A stretch of 64,000 nucleotides of DNA from Lepidodermella squamata (Eukaryota > Animalia > Gastrotricha). The stretch covers positions 1,178,001 through 1,242,000 of the forward strand of contig JBLDXI010000033.1 in assembly GCA_047495785.1 (NCBI GenBank), given 5' to 3'. Below the pieces are notes generated by a model. That model saw only the letters and a list, made by a program, of their open reading frames with translations, had not been told where the DNA came from and searched no databases. This document shows positions 73 through 58,662 of this stretch, one piece after another. The first letter of the stretch is position 1; the number at the start of each line of letters is the position of its first letter. A program made the position numbers and the translations under genes.

Positions 73-3000
73 GTGAGATCCGGCGTCGTCGTTGGCGATG
101 TTGAGTTCGGCGCTGAGCCATTGCGCACCCTGTTGGCCGCATCGCTCCCACAGCAGCCGTTCGTCCTGGTTAGCCTTGGCGTGATAGACGCGAAGGCAGC
201 CCATCTGCGAGCCGTACATGAAGTACCAAAATTGGAAGCAATAACTCGCAGAATTCTTCATGAGCGCCTTTAAAATTCGCGCCTTGTCGCCCTTCTTCTG
301 CGGCGAGGAGCCTTCGATGAAGGCGTAGGTGCCTAAAATTTATAAAAAAATCGTTAATTATCGGAAAATTAGGGCATGAAAAATTACGTGCAAATTAATG
401 TGAACTCAACGATTAAAATTATAAAAATAAATTCGTGCAGTTTTAATTGATTAAAATCAACGAAAAATCACAACGAAAATGAGTTGAAAGTGTCAAAACC
501 AAAACGCAAAGTGATTAAAATTGACGGTTAAAAAAATTCTGGAATTGTTACTGTACCTATCATGAGTGGATTGACCCCGAAATAGTAACTGAGTGAGACC
601 CACTTTGAAAGGACTGGCGTGTGATAAGGTTTGATATGTTTTTAAATGGGCCGCGCATGCAGATGAGGCACAAGTTGACAAAAATAATATTAATTATAAG
701 CACCGTGAATATAGGTTAAAGTTAGTATCATTTAAAATTGTGACTTTTTTCAAATTATTAAATTTTAAAAAATGCAAGGAAAATACCTTTCGCTTCACCA
801 GACCCGGCGTAGGTGTGGTCGAAAGACGGCCCAGTGCCGTAGGACGGGGTTGGTCCACGGTTCATCTGCCAGTCGAAAATGTCGCCGAAAGAATTCTTCC
901 ACGCGCAAAAGTTGTTCGCCTCGAAATCGCAGAAATCATCGTCCGCATCGGTCGGGCCCAACTGGCACGTTTTCGGCGAGTACGAAACTTGGACGTCGTC
1001 CAACGAAATGGTGCCGCCAAACGTCGGCTGCCCGGCCTCGGCTTCGAACGCAATCTGGAAGAACGGGCCCTTTGGAATAATCGGCGCTTGGCCGCTGAGC
1101 CACGCGTCGCCAAAGTTACCCCGCGCCTCCCAGATAACGTCCTCCTCGAGGCCTGGGTTGATGACAACCATGCGCAACACCCCGGCATCGACGCCGTTAA
1201 CGCCGAAGAAAAATGTGATGCAGTTGACGTCGTAGCTGAAGTAGCGGCTTAGTAGTCTAGCTTTCTGGCCTCGCTTCTGAGGCTGGCCGGTCATTGTGTA
1301 GGCGTAATGGCCGTTTGTGTCACCCCGGCTGTGATCGACCGCCGGCATGGTTGGGTGGCGCTGGCGCACGCTGTTCGGCGAGTATGGCCCGTAAATGTCC
1401 CATGAAAAGTCGCTGTTCGGATCACTGCCCCAGCCACACCACGTTTGCTCAAACGAACAAGTCGCTGTAAAAACATATTGTGAAGTTTTACGAGCTGTAC
1501 AGTGACCACAAATGAAACATCAATTAGTATCGAGGGTAGAAACATTATTCGAGATTAAAAAAGGGAAAAAAACAGGGGCGAAATTCTTAGAAATAGGCAA
1601 GCTATAGGCGTTTTCATCACCTCCAACAAAAAAATGCCATTAAGCTGGTCGAAAAAAATAAGTCAAGGCGGGATAGGTTTTTTTTGTTACCTTTGATTAG
1701 CATGTTCAAGTCTGCGTTAGTGTGGTTAAAATCTTAATTAGCATGTGCCATGCACGAATATATAAAAGGCGCGATCATTTTTTTAGAATGATAATAATAA
1801 TAATATCTGTGGTGTGATTATATGCGAGGTTCAGCGGCGTGTTTTTTACCTGACGTAATGTTCGTGCTACCATCAACAGGTGTGGCCCCGGCACCTCCAA
1901 CAAGGTTTACATTGACAGGCCCACCTTTTGCTGATGACGTTGCGCCGACAATGGGCAGCAACACGGATGCTGGTGTCGCGGTATTGCCGCCTTTTATTAT
2001 TTCATCATTATTCATTCATTAATAATTGAAAACAATTAGTAAAGCGCTAAAAGTCGCACTTTAAATTTTCTACTAAAAATTCCACCTTAATTAATACCTA
2101 GTAATTTTTCCCGATTAATTTTAAACAACTGCCTTCACCACACATTCACCGTTCACCAGAGTGCTATTTTAGGTGTGAAATTAATTGACCTGAGAAACGC
2201 CCTGGTTTTCGCAGTTCAGTGAATAAAATGTGCGTAAAAAAGGATTTTTCAAAAATTTTGAAAAATCCGAACTCCAATGAAAATGATTCATCGCAAAAAG
2301 TGTTGCCGAAAAGCGTCGCATAACTTTACAAATTAGAGGTATTTTCTTGGGTGTTCGATAGCTTAGGTATTAGATGGCTAGCAAATACCCGAAACAGCAA
2401 ACGCGACAAAACAGCAAATTTATTAACTTGCGACATAACAGCAGAAAATCGATGCATCTTTTGAATAGTAAGTTTTTGCTGTTTTGTCGCAAAATATAAA
2501 ATTTGCTGTTTTGTCGTAATTGCTGTTCTGCGAAGTTGCTGTTTTGTCGCCGTACCAAATTGGCACGCAATAAAAATCGGAAACACGCGATAAATTCGGA
2601 TTTTTCTGAAAATTTCATGTCCCAACGATTCCGCGTTTTGATAATTCAAGATCAGTCTCAAAGGCTTCCCGTCAAATATTTCAAAACTTTTCAAAAAAAT
2701 TTCAATTTGAGCGATTTTAAATCCACTTCTCGGTAAAAATGTCACACGGTTAGAAAATTATGCGAAAAGCCGAGAAAAAGTTTGCTCTAGTAAAAAAGAT
2801 CTGAATCTCTAAAAAAAAGTTCAGGGGCTGAAACTATGGGATCTGACCCAATTTCTAAGCAAATTAATAATCCACTAGTTCAATTATTTTTCCACAAATC
2901 TCGCATTTAAATCTTACCGACTACGAGTCTTGGCATCGACCCGCTGACAGGATACAAGAACGGCGACGATTTGCCAGCCGATCTTGGCTGATTCTCAAAC

Positions 3001-6000
3001 GAGATCAACATTTCCGAAGTCGTCGCTAGCTGCGTTGTAGTCGTAGGCCTCGTCGTTGTTGTCGTTGTTGTCGTCGTTGTTGGTGCAGTTGTCGTTGTCG
3101 TAGTCGTCGTCGTGCTAGTCGTCGTACTCGTCGAAGCTGTCTTCTGTTGGTAAGGGTAAAGACCGAGGTTATTGGACACCCCGAGATACGAAGGAATGGA
3201 AAGGCCTACGGATCGAACAACCGGTGACATCGGCAGTAGGACAGGTTGTTGAGCAGGGCCTTCGACACTCAGCTTATTCGAAGGCGGAGCTGGCACAGAG
3301 GGTGGTTGTAAGGACCTAGCGACATTGACGTAAGAAATCGAAGCCACCCTAGGCTGGGTCGACATTGTTTCAACAGGCGTTGTGCCGTAGCCGTGGTCGT
3401 AACTCAACGCGCATTTGTACAACCTGTTGATTTCACGCACGTCCCAATTTGACAGGCCGTTTCGCTGGCCGATCGTTGTTCCGTCTTTCCGCGGCGCGAT
3501 TGTGATGAGATTAGGCGCTTTTGAGAAGTCGCTCGCACCGTAATGCATGACTGATTCGTAGTCGTAGGGCGTGCCCGAGTCGGTGGCGAACTTCGGGTCG
3601 AGCTTTTTGAAGTTCTCCCGCGCGTACCATAGAATATTGTCCCAGATAATGTTGACGTAGCTGTCGCGGTCGGGCCGGTTCTGCTCGTGCCAGAAGCCGA
3701 TGGCGTGCATCAACTCGTGGACGATGGTTCCGTAACGCCAGAAACAGCCAGAGTTAAGGCGGACTAATTGCATGCCTAATTGGCGACCGGCACTTGACGA
3801 ACATCTGTTATTCAAAAAAAAAGTTAATTAGCTGTTGTTGTTGTTGTTGTTCTGATGAGCTGGGAAATATGGGAATTTAATTTATTTTTATTCAAATAAT
3901 TTAGTTTCATATTTCTAATTGAAAAAAGGATGAAGATGCAAATTCAGCGAAAAATCCTAAAACTCATGGAAATGTTGACAAATTTCACTTAAGAAATTTC
4001 GTTCGCGTGGTAAATTTGGTTTCATCCAAGTTACAAAAAAAAGTTGGTGATAAAAATGTGAAGTTCAGCTTCAAATCTCTAATAATTAAAAAATAAATTG
4101 AAAAAGCGGGAAAAAAATCCTGAAACTTTTAGCAAAAATATTGAAAAATGGCATTCACATAATGTTTTTCGACTTGGCCGCCATATTTTAAAATTATTCA
4201 AAATTTAGGTCATTCGTAAAATAAATTCAGACAAAAATATTGGCAAAAATTGAAGTTCGGAATCGGTCACAAAAGAATTCAACAATTCAGATTTTTCAAA
4301 TTTCAAATTTTTAAATTATTCTGGATTTGAAAAAATTGAAACAAATTCCGTTCGTTTGCTGATGGCAATGGAAATGTTTGCAAACCCCACGTGACAATCA
4401 AATTTCTACTGGGTTAGATTTTGGGGCTCGCCACTCACATAGACCGAGAAAAAGCCCTGGATTTGTTCAGAGCCGTACGGTTCCGCCTGTACAACGCCCT
4501 TATTTTCAATAATAAACAGGTTTTTCAAGATCAAGCCCATTTTTAAATTAGCGAATTTCAAAAACAAAAATCACGACTTACAATGCATCCTGAACTTTTT
4601 TGATGTAGATGTAGTCGGTTTCATCGACACGTCGCTGGAACCTGATACACGTCCTCTGGCCGTAGTCTTCGAACGCCCTCAGCAGCATATTCCGCTCCGA
4701 ATCCGCGAAATCGCCATCGATGATGTACGGAATAACGCCATTCGGCCACAGATAGTCGTCATTAGCTATCGCGGCATTGAGTACGTTTTCAGCGCCGGGG
4801 ACGTTCGCCATCGACGACACAAGGATGTCGCCCTCGACAACGTCGTAGCAGTCACCCTCGCTGAGAGCGACGTGCGACAGCGCGACGTCGCGCGAGTTGC
4901 CACCGGTTGTGCCGTCGAAGATGAGCCGGAAGTTGTACGTCGCGTTCAGCTTGACTAGCGCCGTCAGCCACGTCGAGTGCGAGTCGTCCTGTGACGTCCA
5001 CGCGACGTATTCCGCCCGCGATTCATTACGCACGATAACCTTGAGCGACGACAGGCCCTCCGGGTTGAACAGGTAGTACAAAAATCGCAGGCAAAAGCCG
5101 CTATGCATGGCTGAATTCGTCGCCGGCACCCACTCGGAGACGAGCCTAGCATGCTTGCCAAACGACTCCGCCTGCGTTTCCACGTAGATGAAATAGTCGG
5201 ACGTGTTCTGCGGGCCGGCTTGCAGCATTTGCTGGTCGAGCGCGTTGTTGGGCGCGGCGAGGCGCGCGAATGCGGTTATATTGCTGGCCAAGGTCGGCGG
5301 CGCGGTGTTGGTGCGCGAAAATTGCGCCCAGTCGAGGTCGTCGAGTTGTGATTGCGTCCAATAGCATAAGCTGTTGCGGAACTCGCAGTCAATCAGATTG
5401 GTAGCACCAGCGACTGGCTTAATTCCACCTTTAAAATATTAAAAAAAATCCTCCTTAATTATTTTTCATTATTTTTTCATTTTATTTTCATCCGATTTTT
5501 GAATTATATTAGGGAGTCACTCGTTTTTTGTTTTGTTTTGAAGAAGTTGAGAAAGACATGTTTTGCTTCTTTTTGCGTTCAAAATAGCATTTACTGCGGT
5601 TAATGACTATTTACGAAGTGTCCCCGTTTCCCAGACTTCACTACACCCTACAACGGCTTTTACTTGCCTGTTTGCCCTAGTATATTTTGGCGACTCGCGC
5701 CACTCAAATAACCGCTGTATTTTTGTCAAAAGAGCAAGCGCCGGCTATATGCCTAAAACAACCCGGGGCAATAAAACTGTCTGCAGCTATCATTTTATGG
5801 GGCTCACAAAAAGCACAACAGGCGCGCGCAATAGCATTGTCTGTGTTGAAGACAAAATTTTCACCGCACGACAAAAGTGCGGTCATCTAATAATAAGTAT
5901 CTGCTTTTTCATCTCTGCCTTTTCATGAAATAACTGCGTATATCATTACAACCCATCTTTATGGCCCCGTAGGTGGGCGAAACAACGTACAATGAAACGT

Positions 6001-19822: not shown

Positions 19823-21248
19823 ATGGCCTGCTCTTTCGCTAACAACGCTTCATCCGTCCTGTCGGCTGGTTTCGACGGTCTTGCTGCCAAGCTTGGCCAA
19901 TACAACCAATCTGGTCTCGCTGGCATCAACGCTGCCACTAGCAACGGCGCCAATAGCTGCAACGTTTCTGCTGCCCAAATCAACGCCAACAACATCGCTG
20001 CCCAGATCGGCGCAAAGATCGGCCAGGAGTACGGCGCTCAGCTGGGTGCTACTATCGCCGGCCAGCTGAACGCCACCTTCGGGGCCCAGTGGGCCGCCCA
20101 GCTGGGAGCTGCCTACGGCGCCGAGGTCGTCGCCGAGTTGGGTGCCCAACTGGCCGTCTTCGCCGCCGCCACCGGTTTCGGCGCCCAGTCGACCGCCCAA
20201 CAGGGTGCTCAGTGGGGTGCTCAGGCTGGCGCCCAGTTGGCCGCTATTCTGGCTGCCAAGCTCGGCGGACAACCTGCTGGTATCTTCGCCAACAACCAGG
20301 CCGTCGCCCAGATCGGCGCCGCGATCATCTCGCAGGCTGGTGCCAAGTTGGGTGCTTGCGTCGCTGCCCAAATCAACGGCGGCGCCTTTGGTGCTGGTGC
20401 CAACAGCAGCAACATCGCTGGCAACTTCGGCGGCGTCAACGCCATCAACAACGGCCTGTTCGGTGACCTGAACGGCTACAACGCTGGGCTTCTCGGTGCC
20501 AACTTCGGCGCTTTCGGTGCTAATGTCGACAAATTGGCTGGCGCCAACAGCAACTACGCCAACTTCTCTGGTAACTTCGGTGCCAACACTTTCGGTGGCG
20601 GAAACCTCGCCAACCAGGCTGGTCTCTTTGGCGGAAACATCAACGGCCTCGCCAACTCGCAGGCTGCCGCCGACCATCTATACAACATCGCCTTCCGCCC
20701 GTCCAGCCAGGCCGAGCTCTACACCCTGACCAACCCGGTGCAGTACGTCGACAACCAGGGCAACCGCCAGCTGTTCCTCGCCTTCGAGCTCAAGGGCTTT
20801 AAGCCTGAGGAAGTCACCGTCACCCTGAACAAGGCCGAGCGCGCCGTCGTCGTCGAGGCCGCCCACGACATCAAGGAGGGCAAGGAGCACCAGATCTCCC
20901 GCAAGTACTCGCGCAAGTTCGTCCTGCCCGAGGTGAGTAAAATCATAGAATATCTCAATCAACTCTAAACTAATGCTTTCCTTTATCTTTCAGACCCTTG
21001 CCAAGATCGACCTGGCCAAGGTTGAGCTCAAGTCGCATCTGAACGCGAATGGCTTCCTGACCATCGAGGCCGAGCTGCCGAAGCTGAGCGCCGAGGAGAT
21101 CGCCAAGCTGCCGGTTTCTTCGTCTCAGCTGCTTAACGCCGCTGCCCTGAACAGCAGCAACGTCTTCGGTGGCAACAACCAGTACGACAACAACGTCTAC
21201 GGCAACATCGCCAACGCCGTCAAGCCCGTCACCGTCAAAACTGCCTAA
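19823..21248 (+). CDS. Giant small heat-shock/alpha-crystallin-domain protein 1 (454 aa) with Gly/Ala helical-repeat and N/G/F-rich N-terminal extension
   Basis: Exons 19823-20932 and 20994-21248. Crystallin-domain motifs FELKGFKPEEVTV, ISRKYSRKFVLPE, SHLNANGFLTIEA; C-terminal IXI-like VKPVTV; AATAAA at 21351. Confidence 0.9.
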
Positions 21249-25731: not shown

Positions 25732-28700
25732 ATGAAGCGGATGTCGATTTTCACCATTTTTCCAGTAAGCTAAAGCTTTTGAGCTGGGTTTTTTGTACAA
25801 CTCAGTAATCAAATGACCAATAAATAATGTCTGCTCATCGTTTGCCTCTTTTACAGGCACAGTCGGCATTATCTTCGAAGTGGATAGAGGATTCCTTTCA
25901 CCGGAGCGAATGCAGACAATTCATCCAAGACATCAACAATCGGGATAGGTAACAAACTCCTCAATATTCTCCAGGTAGCCTACGGAAACTGTATTCCTAT
26001 TAGGTGTGGATGCGGACGCGATAGAGCGTCCCATGGGTCAGGGATATCAGACACCCCGCCAATCGGCTATTGGTCCTCGAAACGTCATACCGACAGTTCG
26101 CCAACTGACGCCTATGGCACTGTTGAGTTTACAACAGGAGTGCACTCTCACTACATAAGGATGAGCCCATTATCTCGTCCGAATGACGTGATCCGCCTGT
26201 TAACTGAGCAATGGGGTGTCGACCCTCCGAAACTTGTCGTCACCATTCATGGTGGAATGAACAATTTCGATCTACCCCCTCATGTCAAGCGTGATTTCCG
26301 CCGAAGTCTGCAACGCATGGCTGCTGTTCCGGGTTGCTGGATCATAACGACAGGCCTCAACACCGGGATAGCGAAACATGTCGGAGATGCGATAACTGCA
26401 GGATTGTTGCGGCGAAACCGCGCTGTTGTTATTGGAATCGCTCCTTGGGGTGTTGTAGCCGGCAGAAATCGCCTGGCTGTCCGGAATGCCAATGTCCACT
26501 ACTACCCTCCCGCGAATGCCTCTGGGGCAAATGTCCTCAACCCGAACCATTCGATTTTCCTGCTTATCGACGACGGAACGGTTGGCAAATACGGGCATGA
26601 GGTATGGAACCCAATTCAACTGAAATGCCCTGATTAACCTGATATCTTAGGTAAAATGGCAGCAAGATTTCGAACGGAGCCTTTCTGTGCCGTTAATCGC
26701 TGTTTTAGTGGAAGGTGGAGCTCACTGCATAAGAAGGTCAGCTGATTATCTTGCTGCAGCAAAACCTTTGGTAGTCATGAGCGAAACTGGCCGGGCTGCT
26801 GACGTTCTCACGCTGTCTCTCAAACTCGGCTCAAGCAGCTTTGAAGAGTCAGATTTGAATATCATTTCTGCACAAATTGAACAGGCCTTCGGATCTTCAA
26901 GCTTTGCTCACAGGAACAAGGCTATTATTAACGATTTGACAGCGTGTCTTAAGCGTAGGAAGTTTATAACTGTATGGTCTGGCGGGGTAAGCAACTCGGA
27001 GCTCGACGTTTGCATACTTACTGCATTGCTACGATCTCAAGAACGGACTCCAATTGAGCAATGGCGACTCGCTCTGGCTTGGAACCGAGTTGATTTGGTT
27101 AGCAACGAGAAGCTACCTAGCTCTCTAGCGGCTAGAAACAGCTCATCGCCTCTTGATGAATCTCTCAACGAGGTTCTGCTAGAAGCCGTAGCAATGGACC
27201 GGATAGATTTCGTGAAACTACTGCTGAAACAGGGTATTAACCCTGGAGAGGCGCTCAATCACAAACGCTTAGAACGGTTGTACAACTTACGAAGCACAGA
27301 CAGCTGGGTCATTCGAGATTTGATCCGCCTGGTTCTTAAACGCCAAGTTGTTGGGCGAATTACTTTGCTCGACATTGGCTACATCCTCGAGACATTGATG
27401 GGGTATGGCTTCAGGTCGAGTTACTTGACGATGAAACCAGCAAAGAAATCGAAAACTGCCGTGTTGGATCAACAATTTCGCTATCCTTTCTCGGACCTTT
27501 TGGTATGGGCTATTTTGATGCAACGTCATGAAATGGCTCGTCTGATGTGCACGAAAGGCGAGGAAACTCTAGCCAAGTCCATTGTGGCTTGCCGTCTCTA
27601 TAGATCTATAGGAAAAATTTTGGCGGCAGACGTCACTTCTGAGATAATTTCTGAGTTCAGGAGGCTGGAAAAAGAATTTGCGAACCTTGGAGTTGATCTG
27701 TTGACAAAATGCCACAAACAAGATGACCTGCTTGCCCAGCATCTTTTGACCAATGAGTTGAGCTACTTCTCCAACAAAACCTGTCTAAGCCTTGCAGTAT
27801 CAGCGAGTCATAAACATTTGGTCGCCCATCCTTGCAGTCAAGGTTTACTAGACGCTCTATGGACGGGCGGGTTGAGGCAGAGATCAACCAGACCTTGGAA
27901 AATTCTTCTTGGACTCCTCTGTCCACCGTTTGCAGTTCTAGGTTTGAGGTACTTGAGTGAAGAAGAACTGAGTCTCCAACCTCAAACCGAAGCTGAAATC
28001 GAGGAGCAACGCCTCGAGCAATCTCATGAGTTGGAGAACATGGAGAATCCTGATGTTCAAATACCCACGCTTCAAGTCCCGGCTATAAGTCTTAGCCATG
28101 CCGAAAGCAGGCAATCACTTGGGTTAAGTAGACAGATTTCTCGCTTTTACAGCTACCAAGCAGGTGGTGGAAGCTTTCGAGCCAACCGTCAGGCGGCCCG
28201 TGAATCCGTGTTTGAATTTGCTTTCAAAGAGGAGGAACTTCATGATAAATCATCGGCTTCATTGCCAGCAACTCCGAACGGAAATAACGATCAATTCATC
28301 TCCGGGCACAGGGCATCTCTTCAAGACGAAATTGGTGAGCAATTGAGTCGCGGAACCCCCCTAAGCGCTGCAAAGCGAATTTACGAATTCTACAACGCTC
28401 CCGTCACGAAATTCTGGCTTCACTCGGTGAGATTTATCAATTGTTTTGCTTCTCTTCAATATTGCTGAATATCATAGATTGGATACGTTGTTTTCATTCT
28501 GTGCTTTTGCTACACCATTTTAACGGAATCTTACATGTCATACGCTCAATGGCCCGAGATCTATATATGCTGTTACGTCGTGACAGAATTCTTGGACAAA
28601 ATTCGCGAAATTGCTTTCATCAACGCGCGTTCTATTCCGGCGAAATTGAGGATTTACTTCCTCGATGGATGGAATATGTTTGACGCAGCTGGTGTATTTT

Positions 28701-29874
28701 TGTTTCTCATTGGCCTTGCGATGCGATGGTCCAATGAGTCCTTCGAAGCTGGCCGAGCTTTCTGGATTGTTTCAATCGTTTGCTTCATGATTCACATCTT
28801 CGACATTTTTCAAGTAAACGACGACCTTGCTACTTATATTATGATTTTACAGGTATGTTAAAAATTAAGGTGGATTGCAATGTTTTATCTCAAGTTCTAT
28901 TACAGAAAATGATGAAACAAATGATCAGTTTTCTGATAATTCTCGGCGTTGTCGTAGTCATGTACGGAATCGTTCTTCAAGCAGCCAGATTTCCCTACAG
29001 AATCCCTGAATGGGACATTCTGAAGGATGTATGGGTTGAGCCGTATCATAATCTGTATGGTGAAGTGTACCATGAGTACGTCGATGTTCGAGCTTGCGAT
29101 TCAGACTATCGTAACTCGACAAGTCGCGACAAGCCTCCTTGTTGGTGCTGCACCTGGTTGGCACCTGTCGGCCAGGCCATCTATCTCATCGTGGCGAATG
29201 TCCTCATGTTGAACCTTCTAGTCGCCGTTTTCAACTCAGTGTTCGAAAAGGTCAGTCGGATCTCGAAGGCACTTGTTCGTTTCCAGCGATACCGGTTGAT
29301 AGTAGACTACCAACTCCTGCCAATTCTTCCTCCGCCTTTCATTGTCTTTAACTACATTTATTTTATTGGGAAAGCTGTTTTTCGAGCTGTTAAAGGTCGC
29401 AAGTCACGAGCTCGGGACCCTGGCCTCCTCAAGATTATTTTGACGCCGCAAGATTTGGCGGCCTTACATGACTTCGAGGAGCAGGCTCGCGACGAAATGG
29501 AGGAACAACTTCTTGCTAGTGAAGTCACCCGTTTTCACCGCGAAGATGATCACTTGGCCAAATCTGCGGCGGAAAAGCTTGAAGCAATCCAAACTTCACT
29601 TGAGATGATGATGCAAAAGCAAGCGGCAATTTTGGCAATGTTGCAGTCCAAGAATTCGCAACTAGAAGAAAACGCCTCACTGCCTCCTAGTATGACGAAT
29701 GAAGCTGGCCAAATGCCAATTGATAACGATATACCAAAGAGGCAACGATTTCTCAGGCTACATGGCGTATCTGAGTCTGCGCTTGAAGATGACGCTGCTG
29801 AGACAACAGAAGAGGGTGACATCGACCGACAACTATCATCGATTGCATTCGAGACGAACCAAGATTTTTCATAA
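25732..29874 (+). CDS. TRPM-family cation channel (~1280 aa), with no C-terminal kinase or NUDT9-H domain
   Basis: Exons 25732-25764 (alternative in-frame ATG at 25827), 25857-25948, 26004-26601, 26651-28426, 28478-28852, 28906-29874. Motifs WIEDSFHRSEC, CGCGR, TDAYGTVEF, VVIGIAPWG, LNPNHSIFLLIDDGTVGKYG, LALAWNRVD, FYNAPVTKFW, pore PYHNLYGEVY, NLLVAVFN, LPPPF. Confidence 0.93.
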
Positions 29875-32380: not shown

Positions 32381-32902
32381 GGCACAAACCGAAATTATCC
32401 GAGAAGCGTTGAAAATTCTTGATTAGTGAATAATGACGATGAAATTGGTGAAAATAAAAGAAAATAAAAGGAATAAGCAGGTAGGTAGCAGGTCTGCAGG
32501 CTGCAGGGGCGGACGAAGGCCGGAATAACGGGTTTCATCGATATCCTGCGATACGGCTAATATACAGCTGCTCCTACTTCGTAGCAGAACAACAAATAAT
32601 AACAAAGCGCCACGAAAATTCATCTTCCACGAAAAACAAGTAGCATGATCGCGTGCAAAGACACGTGCGCTCGATCACATGCTGAAAAAAAGTTGCTGAC
32701 AGGGCAAGGTGACTGGCAGGTTGATTGTTGTAGGCCACGCGGGCCTATTTTTGGAGCCAGGCTAGCACGCGATTCGCGTCTAAAACGCCTATAAGAAGAG
32801 GGTGTGGCTTCATCGAAATATTCATCATCTGCTCATTCGCAATTTGCATTTAGCAATCTAAAGTCTTTTCAGTTTTTCGTAGCCTTCAAATCTTCAAATA
32901 AA

Positions 32903-34336
32903 ATGGCCTGCTCATACACCTCGATGCCCTCGACCTTCGGCGCCGCCGCCGGCTACACCAGCCCGATCAGCGTTGAGAACATGCTCCGCAACAAGGTCGA
33001 CCTCTACTCGGCCCTGCCCGTCGAGCGCAGCCTCATCAACGCCAGCCCGATCGTCGGCAACACCTTCGCCTCGGCCGCTCCCTTCGGCGGTGCCTTCGAG
33101 ACCGAACAGGCCCTCCGCTTCGGTGGTGCTGGCTCCGTCGTCGAGTTCGGCGCCCACACCGGCCGCGTCTTCGGTGCCGACTGCGGCGCCCAGCTCGCCT
33201 CGATCGTCGCCGCCCGCCTCAACACCTTCCTCGGCCACGAGGTCGCCGTCCGCATCGGCGCCCAGTGGGGAGCTGAGGTGTGCGCCAAGCTGGGTGCCGA
33301 GCTCGCCGTCAAGCTCGCCAACGGCTGGCCCGTCGAGCAGTGCGCCCGCTGGTGCTACACCTTCGGAGCCGAGCACGGCGCCGAACTGGGTGCCGTCATC
33401 GCCCAGCGCCTGGGTGCCATCTACACCGCCGAGCACGCCGCCCGCGTCTCGTCGATGCTCTTCGCCGAGCTGAGCCAGCAGCTGTGCTACGTCATCGCCG
33501 CCCGCCTCGGCGAGTCCCGCTTCGGCGCCTCCTTCGGCCGCTTCAACAACTGGACCGGCTCGTACCCGACCACCTACGGATCGTACGCTGGCAACTACGG
33601 CTACCCGACCACCTTCGGCTCGTTCGAGCGCTTCGGTGGCCTGTTCGGCGGTCGCCCTGAGCTCTTCAACAACACCAACACCTTCGGCTCATACCCGACC
33701 ACCTTCGGCTCCTTCGGTGCCAACACCTGGGCCAACACCCCCAACACCTGGTTCAACACCATGTCTGGTGACAACAAGCTGTACAACATCGCCTTCCGCC
33801 CGTCGTCGGAGCTCGAGATGTACACCCTGACCAACCCGATCCGCATGATCGACGTCGAGGGCAACCGCCAGCTGTACCTGTGCTTCGAGCTCAAGGGCTT
33901 CAAGCCTGAGGAGGTCTGTGTCACCCTGAACAAGGCCGAGCGCGCCGTCGTCGTCGAGGCCGCCCACGACATCAAGGAGGGCAAGGAGCACCAGATCTCC
34001 CGCAAGTACTCGCGCAAGTTCGTCCTGCCCGAGGTGAGTAAAATCAAATTTCAATCAACTCTAACTTCATGCTGTTCTTTGTCTTTCTAGACCCTTGCCA
34101 AGATCGACCTGACCAAGGTTGAGCTCAAGTCGTGCCTGACCCAGGAGGGCTACCTCGTCGTCGAGTGCCAGCTGCCGAAGATGACCACCGAGGAGATCGC
34201 CAAGTCGCCGATCATGTCCGAGCTGTACAACAAGATGCCGTTCGGTGGCTACAACGCCGTCCACAACTTCGGTGGCATGCCCTCGATCAGCAGCCACTAC
34301 AACAACGTCAAGCCCGTCACCGTCAAGACTGCCTAA
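32903..34336 (+). CDS. Giant small heat-shock/alpha-crystallin-domain protein 2 (458 aa)
   Basis: Exons 32903-34033 and 34091-34336; same MACS start, same intron position, same crystallin domain and VKPVTVKTA end as gene 1; TATAAG at 32790; AATAAA at 34448. Confidence 0.9.
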
Positions 34337-52781: not shown

Positions 52782-53366
52782 TAATTTCAATTTTGAATTG
52801 AGGATCCGACAATCATTCGCAGAAGAATATACCTAACAGAACTTGTCACCAATTTATTTTACGTCCACCTTTTCGGCGCAAATCAAATGGTGCAAATAAT
52901 GAGCGCAAATCTGATTTTTAAATTTCCCGAGGATTTTTCTGGGACCTTTTTGAACTCTATATGCCAAGGAATGCCTCGTGATAAAGGTTTTATTTTTATT
53001 TTTTTGACGGCTGAATCATATTTTTTATCTAGCCGTGATTCATTTATCCGGAAAAATTAAACAATCGAACTTTTGGCTCTGAACTTTGGCCTGATTTTCT
53101 GAACAGCAGTGATAGCAAAATCTGAAATGACCCCTCAACAAGGTCAAATAAACTAATTTTTGCTTATCGAGTTGACGAGACCGCGCTGCTGACTTACCCA
53201 ACACAAATAAAAACAAGCGATAAGGCGGCCATAAAAATTTTCACTTTATCAGCAATTAACTTAAATTACACGTGAACGTCGGCATATATAAAAATGTCTC
53301 AAAGGGCAAACAATTTGCTAAACAAAATTCATAATAAAACAGCCTAATCTTTAACCTTGAAGAGAA

Positions 53367-56300
53367 ATGACGCAATATTCAACTGCAGGCAGTGAATCCA
53401 ACGTCAAACCTTCTATCTTCATCAGCTATCGATGGAACGAAGCAAAGACAGATGTTTGGAAATTTGCGGACGATTTGAAATCTTCAGATCGATTCTTGAT
53501 TTGGCTCGATAAGGAGGAGATGTACGCAAATAAATTGGAAAGAATGGAAGAGGTAATAAAAATGTGACAATTACCGGATAATTAGCTCAAATCTGCTTAT
53601 AATTTATAGGGTATCCGAGCGGCATGTGTTGTCATTATTTTCTTCAACGACGATTATCAGAAATCAATCGATTGCAGGACCGAGGCTGAAGCGGCGTATC
53701 GGCACAACAAAAAGAAATTATTCGTGAAAATGCAAAAAGCCCCACTTGGAAAGTTTCAAAACTGGTTCGCACCGATCATCGGCAACAACATATACATCGA
53801 TTATTACGCCCTTGAAAATCCATTCGAAGAAATTCTAAAGCACATCGATAAATTACGGCAAGAAGATTCGACTCATTCTAACGAGGAACGGGTTGAAAGG
53901 TTCGGCGATGTTCCATCGGTTGGGAATTATACCGAGAGGCCTGATGTTGAACTTGAACTTCAAGATTCAGTAGCTAATTTGTGTCAGTCGAGAGACCCGG
54001 GTGCTGTTTTGGTAATAGGCGAAGGTGGTATTGGAAAAACGACAATGGTCGCTAAAGCCGTAGCGGCAAATGACGAATTTCTGCGCGAAAACGGCGTCGG
54101 AGTCGTAATTTGGGTCAATGTCTATCAATTATCGCATTCGATTCAAACTTCGGAGAGTCGAAGTTTTGATGTTAATAAAATTTTCTACTCATCAATCGCC
54201 GAGCGGCTAAATGTCAAACACAGCTCCGACGACGCGTTATTTCGACTTCAGGACCATTTAAAGGTCATAAATAATAAGCAGAAATTAGTGCTTATTGTCC
54301 TCGACGATTTGTTCCACGAGAAAATTTTCCAGAGCGCGTTTCGACTCGGCGATTTTGTGCGATGTATAGCTATTTCACGATTTCGAAACGTCATCGACGC
54401 CAGCAGTGATCGATTCATCAGCAATGTCGTCCAGGTTGAAAAATTGCCGTGTGACAGCATTATTGCAATGTTCAATTCTTGCCGACAAACGTTGGACGAT
54501 GAAAAAATTTCGCGACTTGCTACCCTATGCGCCGGGTTGCCGCTAATGGCTTGCGTGTTACGGGCTAAATTACGCCGCTGTTCGACAAAACGGCAAGCTG
54601 AGGCTGTTTTAAACAAGATTTTCGCGACTTCATACTGCACGTTGGCGAGTGAGAAGTGGGGCGATGAAGATAAGAATCAGGACACGATTTCCGAGCTACT
54701 TTTAAGTGGCTTCGAGAGCGAACCTGATCATGTAAGAAAACGTTATTATTCCTTCTTGGTATTCGACGAAGGTACGGCGGTTGAGCTAGAGGATTTAGCC
54801 ATTTTATGGCGATGTGATTTGGACGAAGCGATTGAATTGGCGCAGGAATTTTGCAATTTATCCCTCGTTCGGGCGAATAGTATCAGCGGCTCTGAAAACG
54901 AAACCTACACTGTCCATGCCTATCTTTACGCTGCAGCTTACGATTTCGCTGTGAATAAGGACCATTTAGCTGAGGACAAGGTGAAACTTCGCGAAATATT
55001 GCTCCAAGAAGCGGAAAATGAGGACTGCGAAAATGTCTTACATCTAGCAGTAAGAGGGCACCGAAACGCCCTGGCCGAGGCTATTATGAAGAGTTTCAAA
55101 TCAAATCAAGATTTTATGTTCAAAATCAGCTCCCAGCAGACGATTTCTTCCGGCGAGACTCCCTTGCATTACCTGTTTGACGAAGAATGGCTCCGATGTG
55201 GCGGTAGTGAGCATGAAACAAGCTACTGCCTCGACATAGCCTGCGAGATACTCGACAGGCTGATTCTTGCCAATAAAGAAATCGGAGCTATTTTGAATCT
55301 GCTGATCGAAAAATCTATGCAGCCAGATACGAAATGGTACAACAACCCTTTTTTGACAACGGTTGTCAACGAGAATTTCGCTGCCATGAATTTGCTGCTT
55401 GACAACGGCGTCGATGTGAACATAGCCGATGATTTAGGAAATACAGCCCTAATCAGGGCTGCCATACAATGGCGATGGATGTCGATTGGGCAACTTAGCA
55501 AACGGCCGAATATCGTCGATTTTCCGAACAAAAAAGGCCAGACTGCATTGATGGTTGCTGCTCGAAGTGGCGAGGATGACATAGTTAAAATGTTGCTCGA
55601 AGATTACCCGCCAGAGTCTATTGACATCAACGCGGTTGACAATGACGGCAACACGGCTTTGATCCTCGCGTCGAAGCACAATCACAACAATATTCTTAAA
55701 ACGCTGATCGAAAAGGGCGCTGATGTTTCGGTTCGGAACAAACACGACGAAAGTGCGTTATGTCAGGCTATTTTTCATGGAAACATTGAAGGAGCGAAGT
55801 TACTGCGAGATGGTGGTGGCATTTTGGACTACGGCGAGAAGCAAGCACTGACAGTAATGGCTCGATTCCGAAAGCGAACGATTATGGAAGAGTTTTTAAC
55901 TCAAGAGTTGTCTCGGAACTCTATTGATTACGATCGGGGTTGTTTCTTTACCCTATTCCGATCAATCGGCATTTGGACGAGTGAAGATATCGACTGTGCT
56001 GAAATGGCCGGCGATCGCCATGAATTCCTTACGGCAATCTACAACCATTCGGACGACGAATCAGCAAAGTTTATATCTCGGATCAGAAACGGAGAAATCG
56101 ACTTCTCGCCGTACGACCTATGGCTTGCTTTAGTTTTGGCAGCATTCACTGGCTCTTACGACGTTGTTGAAGGTCTAATGGGCACGAAAGTTGACGTAAA
56201 TGCAAGGAGCACTCGCGGCAAATGGACGGCTACAATGTACGCTTGTTGTAATGCACACATTTCAATAGCGAAACTGTTGATTGAAAACGGAGCCGACGTC

Positions 56301-57072
56301 ACGTTGGCGTCGATTCCCGACAGCTGGACTGCCATGCATTGCGCGGCTAAAAATGGCATTGAAGAAGTGGTTGAATTCTTACTCAGCACTGAATCCGCTG
56401 AGGCTTTAATGAAAATGCGAACTTCTAATGACGAAACGCCTTTATACATTGCGTCTGAATGCGGTCATTCAAAGGTTGTTAAACTTCTGGCTGATAATAA
56501 GGCCGATGTTAACGCTAAACGGCGAGATGGCTGGACTTCCCTTTGCGTAGCGGCGATGAATGGACATGATGAAGTTGCGAAGATTCTCCTGGAAGCTGGA
56601 GCTGAGGTCGATGTGAAACAAAAAGATAACGCGACTCCCTTAATGTTTGCGGCAAACCAGGTAGGAAAAACTGTCTGACCCGTCTACTTGCTTTTAATCT
56701 TTCACTTTATAGGGCCATCTTGAAATCGTGAGTTTACTTCTCGAAGCTGGTGCTAATGTCAACGAAGTTCAACGCGACCAATTTTCGGCCTTAATGCTAG
56801 CCTGCCGAAGCGGCCATGATAGTGTTGCGAAGTTACTTATCAGCCATAACGCTGACGTCAACATCCGGAACAAAACGGATGGCACGGCTTTGCACATGGC
56901 TGCGTATCACGGCTTTCCCAATCTTGTTAGGATTCTTCTCGCTGCTAAAGCCGACGCTTCGATTCGAAATAAAACAGGCGACACTGCGATGGATATCGCT
57001 AGGTCGAAGGGATACGATGATGTTGTGAAAATTTTGAAAAATGTTAGAATGCCGTCGTTGACTACGCAATAA
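53367..57072 (+). CDS. TIR - NB-ARC (STAND NTPase) - ankyrin-repeat NLR-like protein (1198 aa)
   Basis: Exons 53367-53552, 53610-56660, 56713-57072. TIR: IFISYRW, IWLDKEEM, GIRAACVVIIFFNDDYQKSIDCRTE. NB-ARC: Walker A GEGGIGKT, Walker B LIVLDD, CAGLPL, ILW, TVHA. About 16 ankyrin repeats (e.g. GNTALILAS, DETPLYIAS, GWTSLCVAA). Confidence 0.92.
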
Positions 57073-57544
57073 ATTTCGAGATTTGGCCTTTTCATGTTGT
57101 TTTTTTAACCCAAATTTTAGTTTTATGGCTTTACTCCACGTTATGCTAATTGTGTTAAGATGTTATGCTTAATGTCATACGGCTTATTTTCTCCAGGTAT
57201 AGCTTAAGAAAAGGATAAGCTGAAGAAATTCAGGTTTGTGGTTGCACTTTCTGAAAAACACTGAGGAACGTGAACCACAGTGATGCTTAATCTCCAAGCC
57301 TGAAAAACTGCTTCCCACAATGCGATATTTACTTACGTTTACTCATCATGTGATGCACGCATCATGAATCACCTGGCGTAGTTAATCCTTCTTGTTAATG
57401 ACTATCATCTAGGCGTAGGTGGACGATTCGCGTAGTTTGGTGGGCTGACACCCGTGAAAAAAACGCTTGCACCGAGGCGTCTCATTAACTATCACTTGCC
57501 AAACAATTAACTCGCGTATTTTGCTTTTTTGTTTCTCTGTAAGA

Positions 57545-58662
57545 ATGTTGACTCAGATTTTCGTTACCGCTTTAACTGTTGCATTGTGCTTCGCTAATCC
57601 GAAAGAGGACATTGATGATGCTATGAGAGATGAGAGCTTGTTTTATGAGGATGTAAGTTGGAAATTCGCGGATATGACTGAATTTATCAAATTCTAATTA
57701 GGCCACTACAACAACGACAACTAGACGACCTGCGAGTTGGAATTTTCTGGAGCTGAACGATGGCTGTTTCCTACCAGAAGCTTCCCAGCCAGGAGACAAA
57801 CAATGCCTTCCTAATGCGAAATGCGTGCTTGCTTCTTCCGCTTGTAAAAATGACGAATTCAACTCTTTGGGTGGAATCATCGGCTATGGCAAATGCGTTT
57901 GTAACGATGGATATACTGAAGATTCGAAAGGAGACTGCAAAATTGGTTAGAAAAATGCCACGAAATTGCCAGGATTACTTCATTTTAACATTTCATAGGC
58001 GTCAAATTGGGACAATCTTGCGCCTCACCTAACAGCACCTGCATTACTGATAAAGCAAGCTGTCGGGGCGGGGTTTGTACCTGCAATCAAGGTTACAAAA
58101 CTGGCCCGAGTGATGGTATTAAGCGTATTTTAATATTTTAATCATCAATCCATAATTTAATTTTTCAGATTGCATTCTGACGATTGAAACGGCAGACTAC
58201 AACGAATTTTGCTACCATTCGGACCAGTGCTACTACGGCATGATATGCAACAATCGGAAATGTAGCTGCCCACCTGGTTACATTGTGGGCAATAATTCGA
58301 AATGCATCGAAAGTGAGTCCTCTCCTTCGACTTTCAATATGTCAATTTCATGATGTTTTTCTTCAGAGAAACTCGGAGATTACTGCAGAAATGACGCGGA
58401 TTGTTCAACTGTAGCAAACACTAGATGCTCCTCCAGCCGCTGTCAATGTGCCCAAGGCTTCCGAATGGAGAGCATAGTCGCAGATTTGAGCGGTAGTCTA
58501 AAACAAGTTTGCATTTCTCAAACTGATAAACTACTCGGATCGGGTGCACCCTGTGACCCTACTTCAGCTATCGGCACCAAAGGTACAAAGCTGTGTGCTG
58601 CCCCTTTGGTTTGCACCAGTTGCAGTTCTGATATATCTGTGTGCACCATAAAGAACCAGTGA
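57545..58662 (+). CDS. Secreted cysteine-rich protein with EB/EGF-like modules
   Basis: Exons 57545-57652, 57702-57945, 57999-58116, 58169-58312, 58367-58662; signal peptide MLTQIFVTALTVALCFA; repeated CxCxxG(Y/F) (CVCNDGY, CTCNQGY, CSCPPGY, CQCAQGF). Confidence 0.82.

Follow-up and report, generated by a model that had tools for sequence, protein, structure and literature searches.

NAD+-consuming receptors that carry a TIR domain on a STAND switch are established in plants and bacteria. The locus described here raises the question of whether an animal gene encodes a receptor of this kind, and what its TIR domain would do once activated. Reading the window (the whole 64-kb stretch of DNA that was analysed), we find a three-exon gene on the + strand at 53367-57072 (Table 1). 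The spliced coding sequence of 3597 nt has no internal stops and gives a protein of 1198 aa. Along the protein, a TIR domain is followed by an NB-ARC/Apaf-1-type switch and then by 15-16 ankyrin repeats arranged in two blocks. The ORF list contains no ORF of at least 60 aa in the 900 nt upstream of the gene, and an AATAAA at 57068-57073 overlaps the stop codon. Searching the 64-kb window, we found no paralog of the gene by tblastn and no RNA family by Rfam scan. The neighbouring genes are animal genes, encoding TRPM, astacin/MAM, and sHSP proteins; the best named matches of the TRPM gene are nematode and insect proteins at no more than 51% identity.

Table 1. Coordinates of the gene and its features, numbered from the first letter of the window.
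Feature	Position	Strand	Remarks
TATA-like box TATATAAAA	53285..53293	+	read from the sequence; about 75 nt before the ATG; putative promoter element
Exon 1	53367..53552	+	ATG at 53367; 62 codons; aa 1-62; GT donor at 53553
Intron 1	53553..53609	+	57 nt; GT..AG; phase 0; in-frame TGA
Exon 2	53610..56660	+	1017 codons
C-terminal TIR half (strand C to helix E)	53610..53843	+	opens exon 2; aa 63-140
Glu87 codon GAG	53682..53684	+	aligned with the catalytic Glu of enzymatic TIRs
NB-ARC module (nucleotide-binding domain, helical domain 1, winged helix)	53973..54923	+	Pfam, fold model, family alignment
Low-confidence helical linker, then ankyrin repeats	55026..56660	+	Ank_2, repeat HMM, AlphaFold
Intron 2	56661..56712	+	52 nt; GT..AG; phase 0; skipped in RNA-like run X1
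Exon 3	56713..57072	+	119 codons and TAA; final three and a half ankyrin repeats and a short tail

The gene is intact, transcribed, and under purifying selection. An RNA-like public run (X1) covers the exons only and extends from 53378 to 57022, where the last X1 piece shown stops. Its depth covers exon 1 and is absent both from the upstream flank at 53100-53240 and from every bin from 57048 on. At intron 2, the X1 contig omits exactly 52 nt with GT..AG ends, and a DNA-like run (X2) retains them. The sole X1 contig that reaches the donor of intron 1 has 39 nt in common with the gene and then enters a paralog-like exon-2 start (GIKRA vs GIRAA). We predict the removal of intron 1 from comparison with relatives only; were the intron kept, its TGA would end the protein after 66 residues, 62 from exon 1 and 4 from the intron. 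One such relative (P0022, L001) reads as one uninterrupted ORF through the point equivalent to intron 1, and its one-ORF protein is colinear with the whole gene product (aa 15-1189); the called ORFs of several other relatives begin just past this position. Among the 40 allelic differences listed, 36 are synonymous and 4 are non-synonymous, and for this reason we regard the gene as being under purifying selection.

The earlier note on this DNA, made from the sequence, had claimed a complete TIR_2-type domain after splicing, and our searches bear this out. Exon 1 encodes the N-terminal half, from strand A ('IFISYRW') to helix B, and matches positions 1-34 of Pfam TIR_2 with 16 bits. The start of exon 2 matches positions 47-92 with 15.1 bits. 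The two halves are colinear, each alone falling below the 28-bit cut-off. Once spliced, the domain (aa 8-132) aligns as one piece to complete, uninterrupted TIRs of other animals and shows the make-up of the TIR family (TIR_2 / STIR clan; flavodoxin-like fold, strands A-E). The AlphaFold TIR model comprises the exon 2 part, from residue 63 on (strands C-E and helices C-E); this part exhibits strand-helix alternation with block pLDDT values mostly of 78-92 (72 and 69 in two blocks).

We then compared the TIR with solved structures and with other proteins. Performing phmmer with each short TIR half against the solved structures, we obtained no matches. The TIR family profile matched Cat1 (3.7e-12), RPS4 (1.8e-8), and Roq1 (4e-6) best, all of which are enzymatic TIRs; SARM1 (3e-4), MyD88 (7e-4), and TLRs including TLR1/2/6 were among the lower-scoring matches. 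A single-sequence TIR search matched animal TIRs and otherwise gave weak matches to two proteins (P0057 and P0106); it did not match the TIRs of bacterial TIR-NB-ARC STAND proteins. The nearest TIR relatives are annelid, amphioxus, mollusc, and echinoderm proteins, which belong to an uncharacterised animal TIR type.

The motif YQKSIDCRTE, whose glutamate the earlier note had singled out, is present, and its last residue is E87. In the profile search against solved structures, E87 shares its column, at the start of helix C, with the catalytic Glu residues that RPS4 ('CVRELE') and Cat1 ('CWDELE') have, and it is invariant in 10/10 aligned relatives. A conserved Trp was reported to be required for ADPR cyclisation (2026 preprint, 10.64898/2026.05.20.726525). 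Four residues before the Glu (E-4), the same alignment column holds Asp83 in this protein, Asn in the family consensus, and Trp in RPS4 and Cat1, so the protein does not carry the WxxxE-type Trp of enzymatic TIRs. We take the E-4 position aligned here to be that of the cyclisation Trp in the preprint. Because this Trp is replaced by Asp, plain NAD+ hydrolysis would be likelier than cyclic-ADPR synthesis.

The NB-ARC domain, also claimed earlier, scores above its Pfam cut-off (47.2 bits vs 23.5; E 2.3e-12). NACHT reached 14 bits, under its own cut-off, and an APAF-1-like winged-helix match stayed sub-threshold (22.2 bits vs 27; E 1.7e-4). No LRR, CARD, or WD40 was found in the Pfam search of the protein. 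All nucleotide-binding motifs are intact and conserved in the family alignments (A3/A4): the P-loop GEGGIGKTT (K205, codon 54036-54038), the Walker B LIVLDD (D294/D295), the sensor Arg319, GLPL at aa 371-374, and an MHD-like VHA with the winged-helix H498. Human Apaf-1 matches the domain at E 9e-7. The AlphaFold model, made as a monomer (pLDDT 88, pTM 0.80), has closed ADP-bound Apaf-1 (3sfz/1z6t) and resting NRC2 as its best fold matches, the Apaf-1 match having an E of 1.5e-14 and a TM of 0.57; RPP1, Roq1, and WRR4A are matched as well.

The count of about 16 ankyrin repeats given earlier agrees with what we find. Ank_2 reaches 201.5 bits in exon 2 (E 2.4e-60) and 81.5 bits in exon 3 (Ank E 1.4e-25). 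An HMM built from the protein itself counts 14 repeats, and the AlphaFold model together with exon 3 gives 15-16 helix pairs. Block A spans aa ~640-806, a disordered insert lies at aa ~832-862, and block B starts from aa ~864. The linker/ankyrin model (mfc70b32e6f29) has a pLDDT of 77 overall and >85 in the repeats.

Where does this protein belong? In the phylogeny, its NB-ARC falls in a distinct NB-ARC-ankyrin clade (SH-aLRT 99), from which animal Apaf-1 and the TIR-NB-ARC-WD40 proteins of bacteria are separate. Outside this genome, the clade is known from eukaryote-like metagenome contigs only, and its members are 20-27% identical to this protein. Among 1.84 billion representative proteins, only a dozen metagenome proteins are relatives at E <1e-10; the nearest relatives, also metagenome proteins, reach no more than 39% identity. 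Bacterial TIR-NB-ARC-WD40 proteins are distant matches (~1e-7), and bacterial TIR_2/NB-ARC clusters are on top of the language-model look-alikes in the ESM Atlas. A word-indexed homolog search with the whole exon 2 returned ankyrin proteins only, and the same search with the TIR/NB-ARC part returned no matches. No relatives were found in the JGI metagenomes searched with the single protein. In PADLOC, the NB-ARC had no match and exon 1 had weak TIR-like matches only.

Plant TNLs (RPS4, Roq1, RPP1, WRR4A) share the layout of this protein: an N-terminal TIR whose Glu is at the catalytic position, then an NB-ARC that has the P-loop, Walker B, GLPL, and MHD-type His, and finally a sensor made of repeats at the C-terminus. 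Unlike the LRR and C-JID sensor of TNLs, the sensor here consists of ankyrin repeats only; moreover, the TIR has no Trp at E-4, the NB-ARC belongs to a separate clade, and the host is an animal. We know of no EDS1 pathway in animals. Apaf-1, CED-4, and Dark share the animal host and provide the closest solved structures and the closest named NB-ARC relatives, but they combine CARD and WD40, whereas the present protein combines TIR and ankyrin repeats and is placed by the tree outside the Apaf-1 group. Vertebrate-type NLRs are NACHT proteins with LRRs; here the switch is NB-ARC and LRRs are absent. Bacterial TIR-NB-ARC-WD40/TPR STAND proteins have the same order of TIR_2 and then NB-ARC, but theirs is a WD40 protein without introns, in contrast to the ankyrin repeats, two introns, and separate clade found here. 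SARM1, too, is an animal protein whose TIR bears a catalytic Glu; it is matched by the family profile as given above and presumably has the strand-A motif 'ISYR' in common with this TIR. It differs as an ARM-SAM-TIR protein without STAND ATPase and, as we assume, retains the E-4 Trp.

Closer to the host, the expanded NACHT/NB-ARC repertoires of invertebrates (amphioxus, sea urchin, corals, and placozoans) likewise consist of animal STAND proteins in which effector and repeat domains have been shuffled. Amphioxus TIR-NB-ARC was reported in 2007 (PMC2246300), coral NACHT/NB-ARC proteins bear ankyrin repeats (PMC4083563), and NB-ARC proteins have undergone a lineage-specific expansion in placozoans (PMC6321704). 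NADase activity was reported for animal TeTIR-NACHT-WD40/TPR proteins, human TEP1 among them; for TEP1 and homologs from diverse eukaryotes, experiments showed it to depend on the Glu and expression to cause cell death (bioRxiv 10.64898/2026.09.21.753143). TeTIR-NACHT proteins (TEP1, NWD1, and others) are similar in that they are STAND proteins of animals and carry a TIR-like domain at the N-terminus; they differ in having an extended remote TIR-like fold and NACHT, against a canonical TIR_2-type domain and NB-ARC here. The earlier note had called effector-NB-ARC-ankyrin layouts typical of fungi and bacteria. We did not find the three-part TIR-NB-ARC-ankyrin combination described for an animal in the literature searched, but the layout is less foreign to animals than the earlier note implies, given the amphioxus, coral, and TeTIR-NACHT precedents. 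Animal TIR-NB-ARC proteins, NB-ARC/NACHT-ankyrin proteins, and TeTIR-NACHT NADases are known already, and this gene belongs to an unannotated receptor branch.

The above observations leave several readings to be weighed. The bacterial look-alikes in the ESM Atlas and the bacterial TIR-NB-ARC-WD40 proteins among the distant matches would suit a recently transferred bacterial gene or a contaminant contig. We rejected this reading as highly improbable, on the two spliceosomal introns, the animal neighbours, the nearest TIR relatives being animal, and the closest NB-ARC relatives lying on eukaryote-like contigs in a clade of their own; the failure of PADLOC to match the NB-ARC also speaks against it. 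An expressed but decaying pseudogene is hardly credible and was likewise rejected: nothing specific favours it, apart from the comparative basis of intron 1 removal, and it is contradicted by the intact 1198-codon frame, the 36:4 ratio of synonymous to non-synonymous differences, and the intact set of ATPase motifs. As Apaf-1 proteins are both the nearest named relatives of the NB-ARC and its best structural matches, the gene might encode a substitute for Apaf-1 that regulates cell death in housekeeping or development, instead of an immune sensor. We find this improbable, since the protein is without CARD and WD40, its clade is separate from the Apaf-1 group, and a clade identity of only 20-27% is typical of receptor families as opposed to a single conserved regulator.

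The remaining rival keeps the same receptor and changes what its TIR does. In a Toll/MyD88-like manner, the oligomers would nucleate TIR-TIR assemblies that recruit adaptor TIRs and kinases without NAD+ cleavage, the TIR being a non-enzymatic scaffold. The matches of the family profile to MyD88 and TLR1/2/6 TIRs, the missing E-4 Trp, and the description of most animal TIRs as scaffolds (10.64898/2026.05.20.726525) agree with this. However, every aligned relative has the Glu and the best profile matches are enzymatic TIRs, so we consider a pure scaffold rather unlikely.

The architecture and the Glu are confirmed and the gene is transcribed and constrained, so it can soundly be read as encoding a STAND-type sensor with a TIR effector. 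This part of the receptor proposed in the earlier note holds; its cyclic-ADPR output is less likely, with Asp83 at E-4. The NADase and immune reading of the gene is plausible but unproven. If the protein works like Apaf-1, plant TNLs, and bacterial TIR-STAND proteins, its ankyrin repeats would keep the NB-ARC closed and ADP-bound. Binding of a foreign or danger-derived ligand would lead to nucleotide exchange and oligomerisation, which would gather the TIR heads and activate them. The most likely output would be NAD+ hydrolysis and, through it, cell-autonomous death or arrest; with Asp in place of the E-4 Trp, a cyclic-ADPR second messenger is less likely. We see an even chance that a functional receptor of the STAND type, cytoplasmic and 1198 aa long, is encoded here by a single-copy gene and that its TIR most likely hydrolyses NAD+. 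More tentatively, the gene may belong to an animal 'TNL-like' immune system that has expanded in this lineage, in which canonical TIRs sit on NB-ARC switches, variable ankyrin sensors recognise pathogens, and NAD+ hydrolysis kills or arrests the infected cell.

Animal TIR-on-STAND NAD+ signalling was shown only lately, the proteins concerned being the remote TeTIR-NACHT ones; an animal receptor that joins a canonical TIR to NB-ARC and ankyrin repeats would be a closer structural counterpart of plant TNLs. As the family is unannotated and its relatives at E <1e-10 are only a dozen metagenome proteins, even a basic activity assay would be new information. The change from Trp to Asp/Asn before the catalytic-position Glu offers a natural test of hydrolase versus cyclase output. 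A receptor of this build would also make it tractable to test whether eukaryotes in general use induced-proximity TIR NADase signalling in immunity. If the TNL-like reading is true, a small invertebrate without a described NLR system would use a receptor logic that is convergent with, or anciently shared with, that of plants and bacteria.

Removing a 57-nt and a 52-nt intron from the receptor gene, we obtained a coding sequence of 3597 nt (1198 codons) without internal stops. This spliced sequence, its Pfam matches and its colinearity with the metagenome protein P0022 bear out the combination of TIR, NB-ARC and ankyrin regions proposed in the earlier note. Read-through of intron 1 is precluded by its in-frame TGA. 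We found no ORF of at least 60 aa in the 900 nt upstream of the gene, and an AATAAA motif overlaps its stop codon.

Exons, introns and promoter element of the receptor gene (window positions)
Feature	Position	Strand	Basis or remark
TATA-like box	~75 nt 5' of the ATG	+	sequence reading
Exon 1	ORF 53367-53567, ends at GT donor 53553	+	ORF and splice-site reading
Intron 1	57 nt, GT donor 53553 to AG acceptor 53608-53609	+	carries an in-frame TGA
Exon 2	start 53610; ORF 53724-56678 extended 5' in frame to AG acceptor 53608-53609	+	
Intron 2	52 nt, GT 56661 to AG 56711-56712	+	links the long ORF to the ORF ending at 57072

Two public sequencing runs, X1 and X2, hold the gene stretch. X2 covers the flanks and the introns, carries two haplotypes and behaves as a DNA run. 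X1 carries no label beyond a guess that it is RNA. It has no depth at 53100-53240 or in the bins from 57048 on, its last displayed piece ends at 57022, and it covers exon 1 from ~53378. One X1 contig omits exactly 56661-56712, with GT..AG ends. The exon-limited depth and this exact skip show that X1 behaves as RNA and that intron 2 is spliced.

The sole X1 contig reaching the intron 1 donor matches exon 1 over 39 nt and continues with 14 nt that encode G-I-K-R-A, where the receptor has G-I-R-A-A. We read this contig as a paralog's mRNA with the same junction, which would lend intron 1 splicing indirect support. Over aa 15-1189, the spliced protein is colinear with P0022, a single uninterrupted metagenome ORF (23% identity), which reads '...EGIRRAS...' across the equivalent of the exon 1/2 junction, compared with '...EE|GIRAAC...' in the receptor. 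The called ORFs of three other relatives (P0015, P0020 and P0024) start exactly at the equivalent of the exon-2 start, suggesting that they share the position of intron 1. At 53515-53553 and 56264-56296, some contigs match the receptor for a few dozen bases before running into related but different sequence; these are probably transcripts or DNA of paralogs elsewhere in the genome. Within the window itself, tblastn found no receptor paralog.

The TIR domain is divided by intron 1. Pfam TIR_2 profile positions 1-34 fall on exon 1 (16 bits), and positions 47-92 match the 42 residues that open exon 2 (15.1 bits); each half is under the 28-bit cut-off, yet the two are colinear and combined would reach ~31 bits. 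The spliced N-terminus (aa 8-132) aligns in one stretch to uninterrupted TIR domains of annelid, amphioxus, bivalve, sea urchin and snail. Searching solved structures with a family profile built from the TIR alignment, we obtained Cat1 (3.7e-12) and RPS4 (1.8e-8), then a bacterial SEFIR protein, Roq1 and RPP1, and also SARM1 (3e-4), MyD88 (7e-4) and TLRs. The family motif 'S-a-n-C-r-t-E-a-e' lies over 'S-V-W-C-V-R-E-L-E' of RPS4 and 'S-D-W-C-W-D-E-L-E' of Cat1, which places E87 at the position of the catalytic Glu (E88 in RPS4, E642 in SARM1). The codon at 53682-53684, singled out earlier for its glutamate, encodes this residue, and the Glu is invariant in 10/10 aligned relatives.

At the E-4 position, RPS4 and Cat1 have Trp, the family consensus has Asn, and the window protein has Asp83. 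We assume that this position, as in WxxxE-type motifs, is that of the cyclisation Trp described in a 2026 preprint. There, the conserved Trp is needed for ADPR cyclisation, and a Trp-less bacterial TIR still kills plant cells (10.64898/2026.05.20.726525). The earlier note had offered NAD+ cleavage or cyclic-ADPR signalling as the output; with Asp83 in place of the Trp, we would rank NAD+ hydrolysis above cyclic-ADPR signalling.

The NB-ARC domain scores 47.2 bits in Pfam against a cut-off of 23.5, followed by a sub-threshold APAF-1-like winged-helix match (22.2 bits, cut-off 27, E 1.7e-4). Among solved structures, the first phmmer match is human Apaf-1 (E 9e-7), spanning NBD, HD1 and WHD. The P-loop GEGGIGKTT (K205), Walker B LIVLDD, Arg319, GLPL and the winged-helix His498 in 'VHA' all remain conserved when relatives are aligned. 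For exon-2 residues 1-475, AlphaFold gives a confident model (pLDDT 88, pTM 0.80). Its top Foldseek matches are closed, ADP-bound Apaf-1 structures (3sfz, 1z6t; E ~1e-14, TM 0.57), with resting plant NRC2 about equal in TM and the oligomer chains of active NRC, ZAR1, RPP1, Roq1 and CED-4 lower (TM 0.33-0.41).

The C-terminal part gave Ank_2 scores of 201.5 and 81.5 bits, and 14 ankyrin repeats are picked up by a repeat HMM derived from the protein itself. In an AlphaFold model of aa 532-1079, a low-confidence helical linker (aa 532-600) precedes two well-folded ankyrin blocks with a disordered insert at ~aa 832-862 between them. Counting exon 3, there are 15-16 ankyrin helix pairs, in agreement with the ~16 repeats first estimated.

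With the TIR-C/NB-ARC part as query, we searched 1.84 billion representative proteins exhaustively with HMMER and obtained 96 hits at E <=1e-3, 12 at <=1e-10 and none at <=1e-30. The ten best are all ENA metagenome proteins. Top hits of sufficient length have NB-ARC and ankyrin repeats, and P0022 and P0028 also have a TIR_2 domain; among the eukaryotic genes on the contigs of P0022 and P0121 are those for kinesin, DPPIV, a 7TM receptor and a protein kinase. After these, the nearest proteins with a name are Apaf-1 homologs of two animals, Trichinella and Sycon. Bacterial TIR_2-NB-ARC-WD40 proteins lie at a similar distance and are also language-model look-alikes in the ESM Atlas. ENA sample ERZ23486764 contains at least two divergent full-length NB-ARC-ankyrin family members, at 10001-14371 of contig L001 and 453-5063 of contig L002. 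These contigs carry animal-type genes and few introns, the TIR of P0022 has no interrupting intron, and an uncultured small eukaryote in this sample has the NB-ARC-ankyrin family too.

In a maximum-likelihood tree of 73 NB-ARC regions, which is unrooted and so silent on ancestry, the window NB-ARC and 15 representatives form one clade (SH-aLRT 99), to which neither the Apaf-1 group nor the bacterial group belongs. By repeat HMM, 11 clade members have ankyrin repeats; most of the remaining five are short fragments. The tree has long internal branches, and identity to the window reaches 27% at most. The closest TIR relatives are animal TIRs, not those of the bacterial TIR-NB-ARC-WD40 proteins examined. 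Given these animal TIR relatives, the spliceosomal introns and the animal neighbours (TRPM, astacin/MAM, two sHSP genes and EamA transporters), we favour an origin by domain shuffling within animals, rather than a recent transfer from bacteria, as the probable history of the gene.

Several neighbours are described here in their own right. Directly 3' of the receptor, 57467-58662 (+) contains several short ORFs that are rich in cysteine and weakly similar to EGF/EB modules (E 2e-4 for the EB module, under the cut-off); they are probably exons of a separate gene for a secreted EGF-like protein. A TRPM-type channel gene at 26687-29874 (+) has SLOG, TRPM2-like and ion-transport domains; metagenome proteins are its best relatives (42-46% identity), and its named matches are from nematodes and insects (<=51%), which shows that the source organism is poorly represented in databases. 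The long ORFs at 19823-20968 (381 aa) and 32804-34090 (428 aa), both on the + strand, have a partial C-terminal HSP20/alpha-crystallin match as their sole match. An astacin metalloprotease with a MAM domain (meprin-like) is spread over at least two ORFs at 2907-5291 (-).

The TIR/NB-ARC half is clearly under purifying selection. Where the window and the runs differ, the 40 differences with the best support comprise 36 synonymous and 4 non-synonymous ones, and 31 of the 40 lie at third codon positions. Across 53793-57022, divergence from X1 and X2 is mosaic: X1 contigs differ by ~4% across the NB-ARC (57/1448 nt) and at 0/713 nt in 55923-56636, while the two X2 haplotypes show 0 and 10-13 differences per 184-188 nt. 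This pattern suggests high heterozygosity, with alleles or paralogs exchanging sequence by recombination or gene conversion.

Several known systems were compared with the receptor. Having neither CARD nor WD40, it is not an Apaf-1 ortholog, and the lack of LRR rules out a plant-type TNL; a NACHT-LRR NLR was likewise ruled out. An animal TIR-NB-ARC was noted in amphioxus in 2007 and likened to plant R genes (PMC2246300). In corals, ankyrin, TPR, WD40 and LRR repeats all occur in the NACHT/NB-ARC repertoires (PMC4083563), and the placozoan NB-ARC expansion has WD40 or TPR repeats only (PMC6321704). According to a 2026 atlas of eukaryotic TIRs, several TIR clades that are confined to eukaryotes and uncharacterised are common in non-model animals (10.64898/2026.04.30.722052). 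The TIR-like 'TeTIR' domains form a family that occurs on NACHT-WD40/TPR proteins; a 2026 preprint shows that those of human TEP1 and its homologs in diverse eukaryotes kill cells and have NADase activity that depends on the Glu (10.64898/2026.09.21.753143). Our literature search found no paper on the TIR-NB-ARC-ankyrin combination in an animal, and none on rotifers with TIR/NB-ARC/ankyrin domains.

In summary, this is a real gene, intact, expressed and under constraint. The receptor is a new domain combination in a distinct NB-ARC clade, inside the known class of TIR-effector STAND receptors. The resistosome-like immune sensor of the earlier note is supported in part: a STAND sensor with a TIR effector is the best reading of the protein, for which we infer an enzymatic output, a ligand and an immune role.
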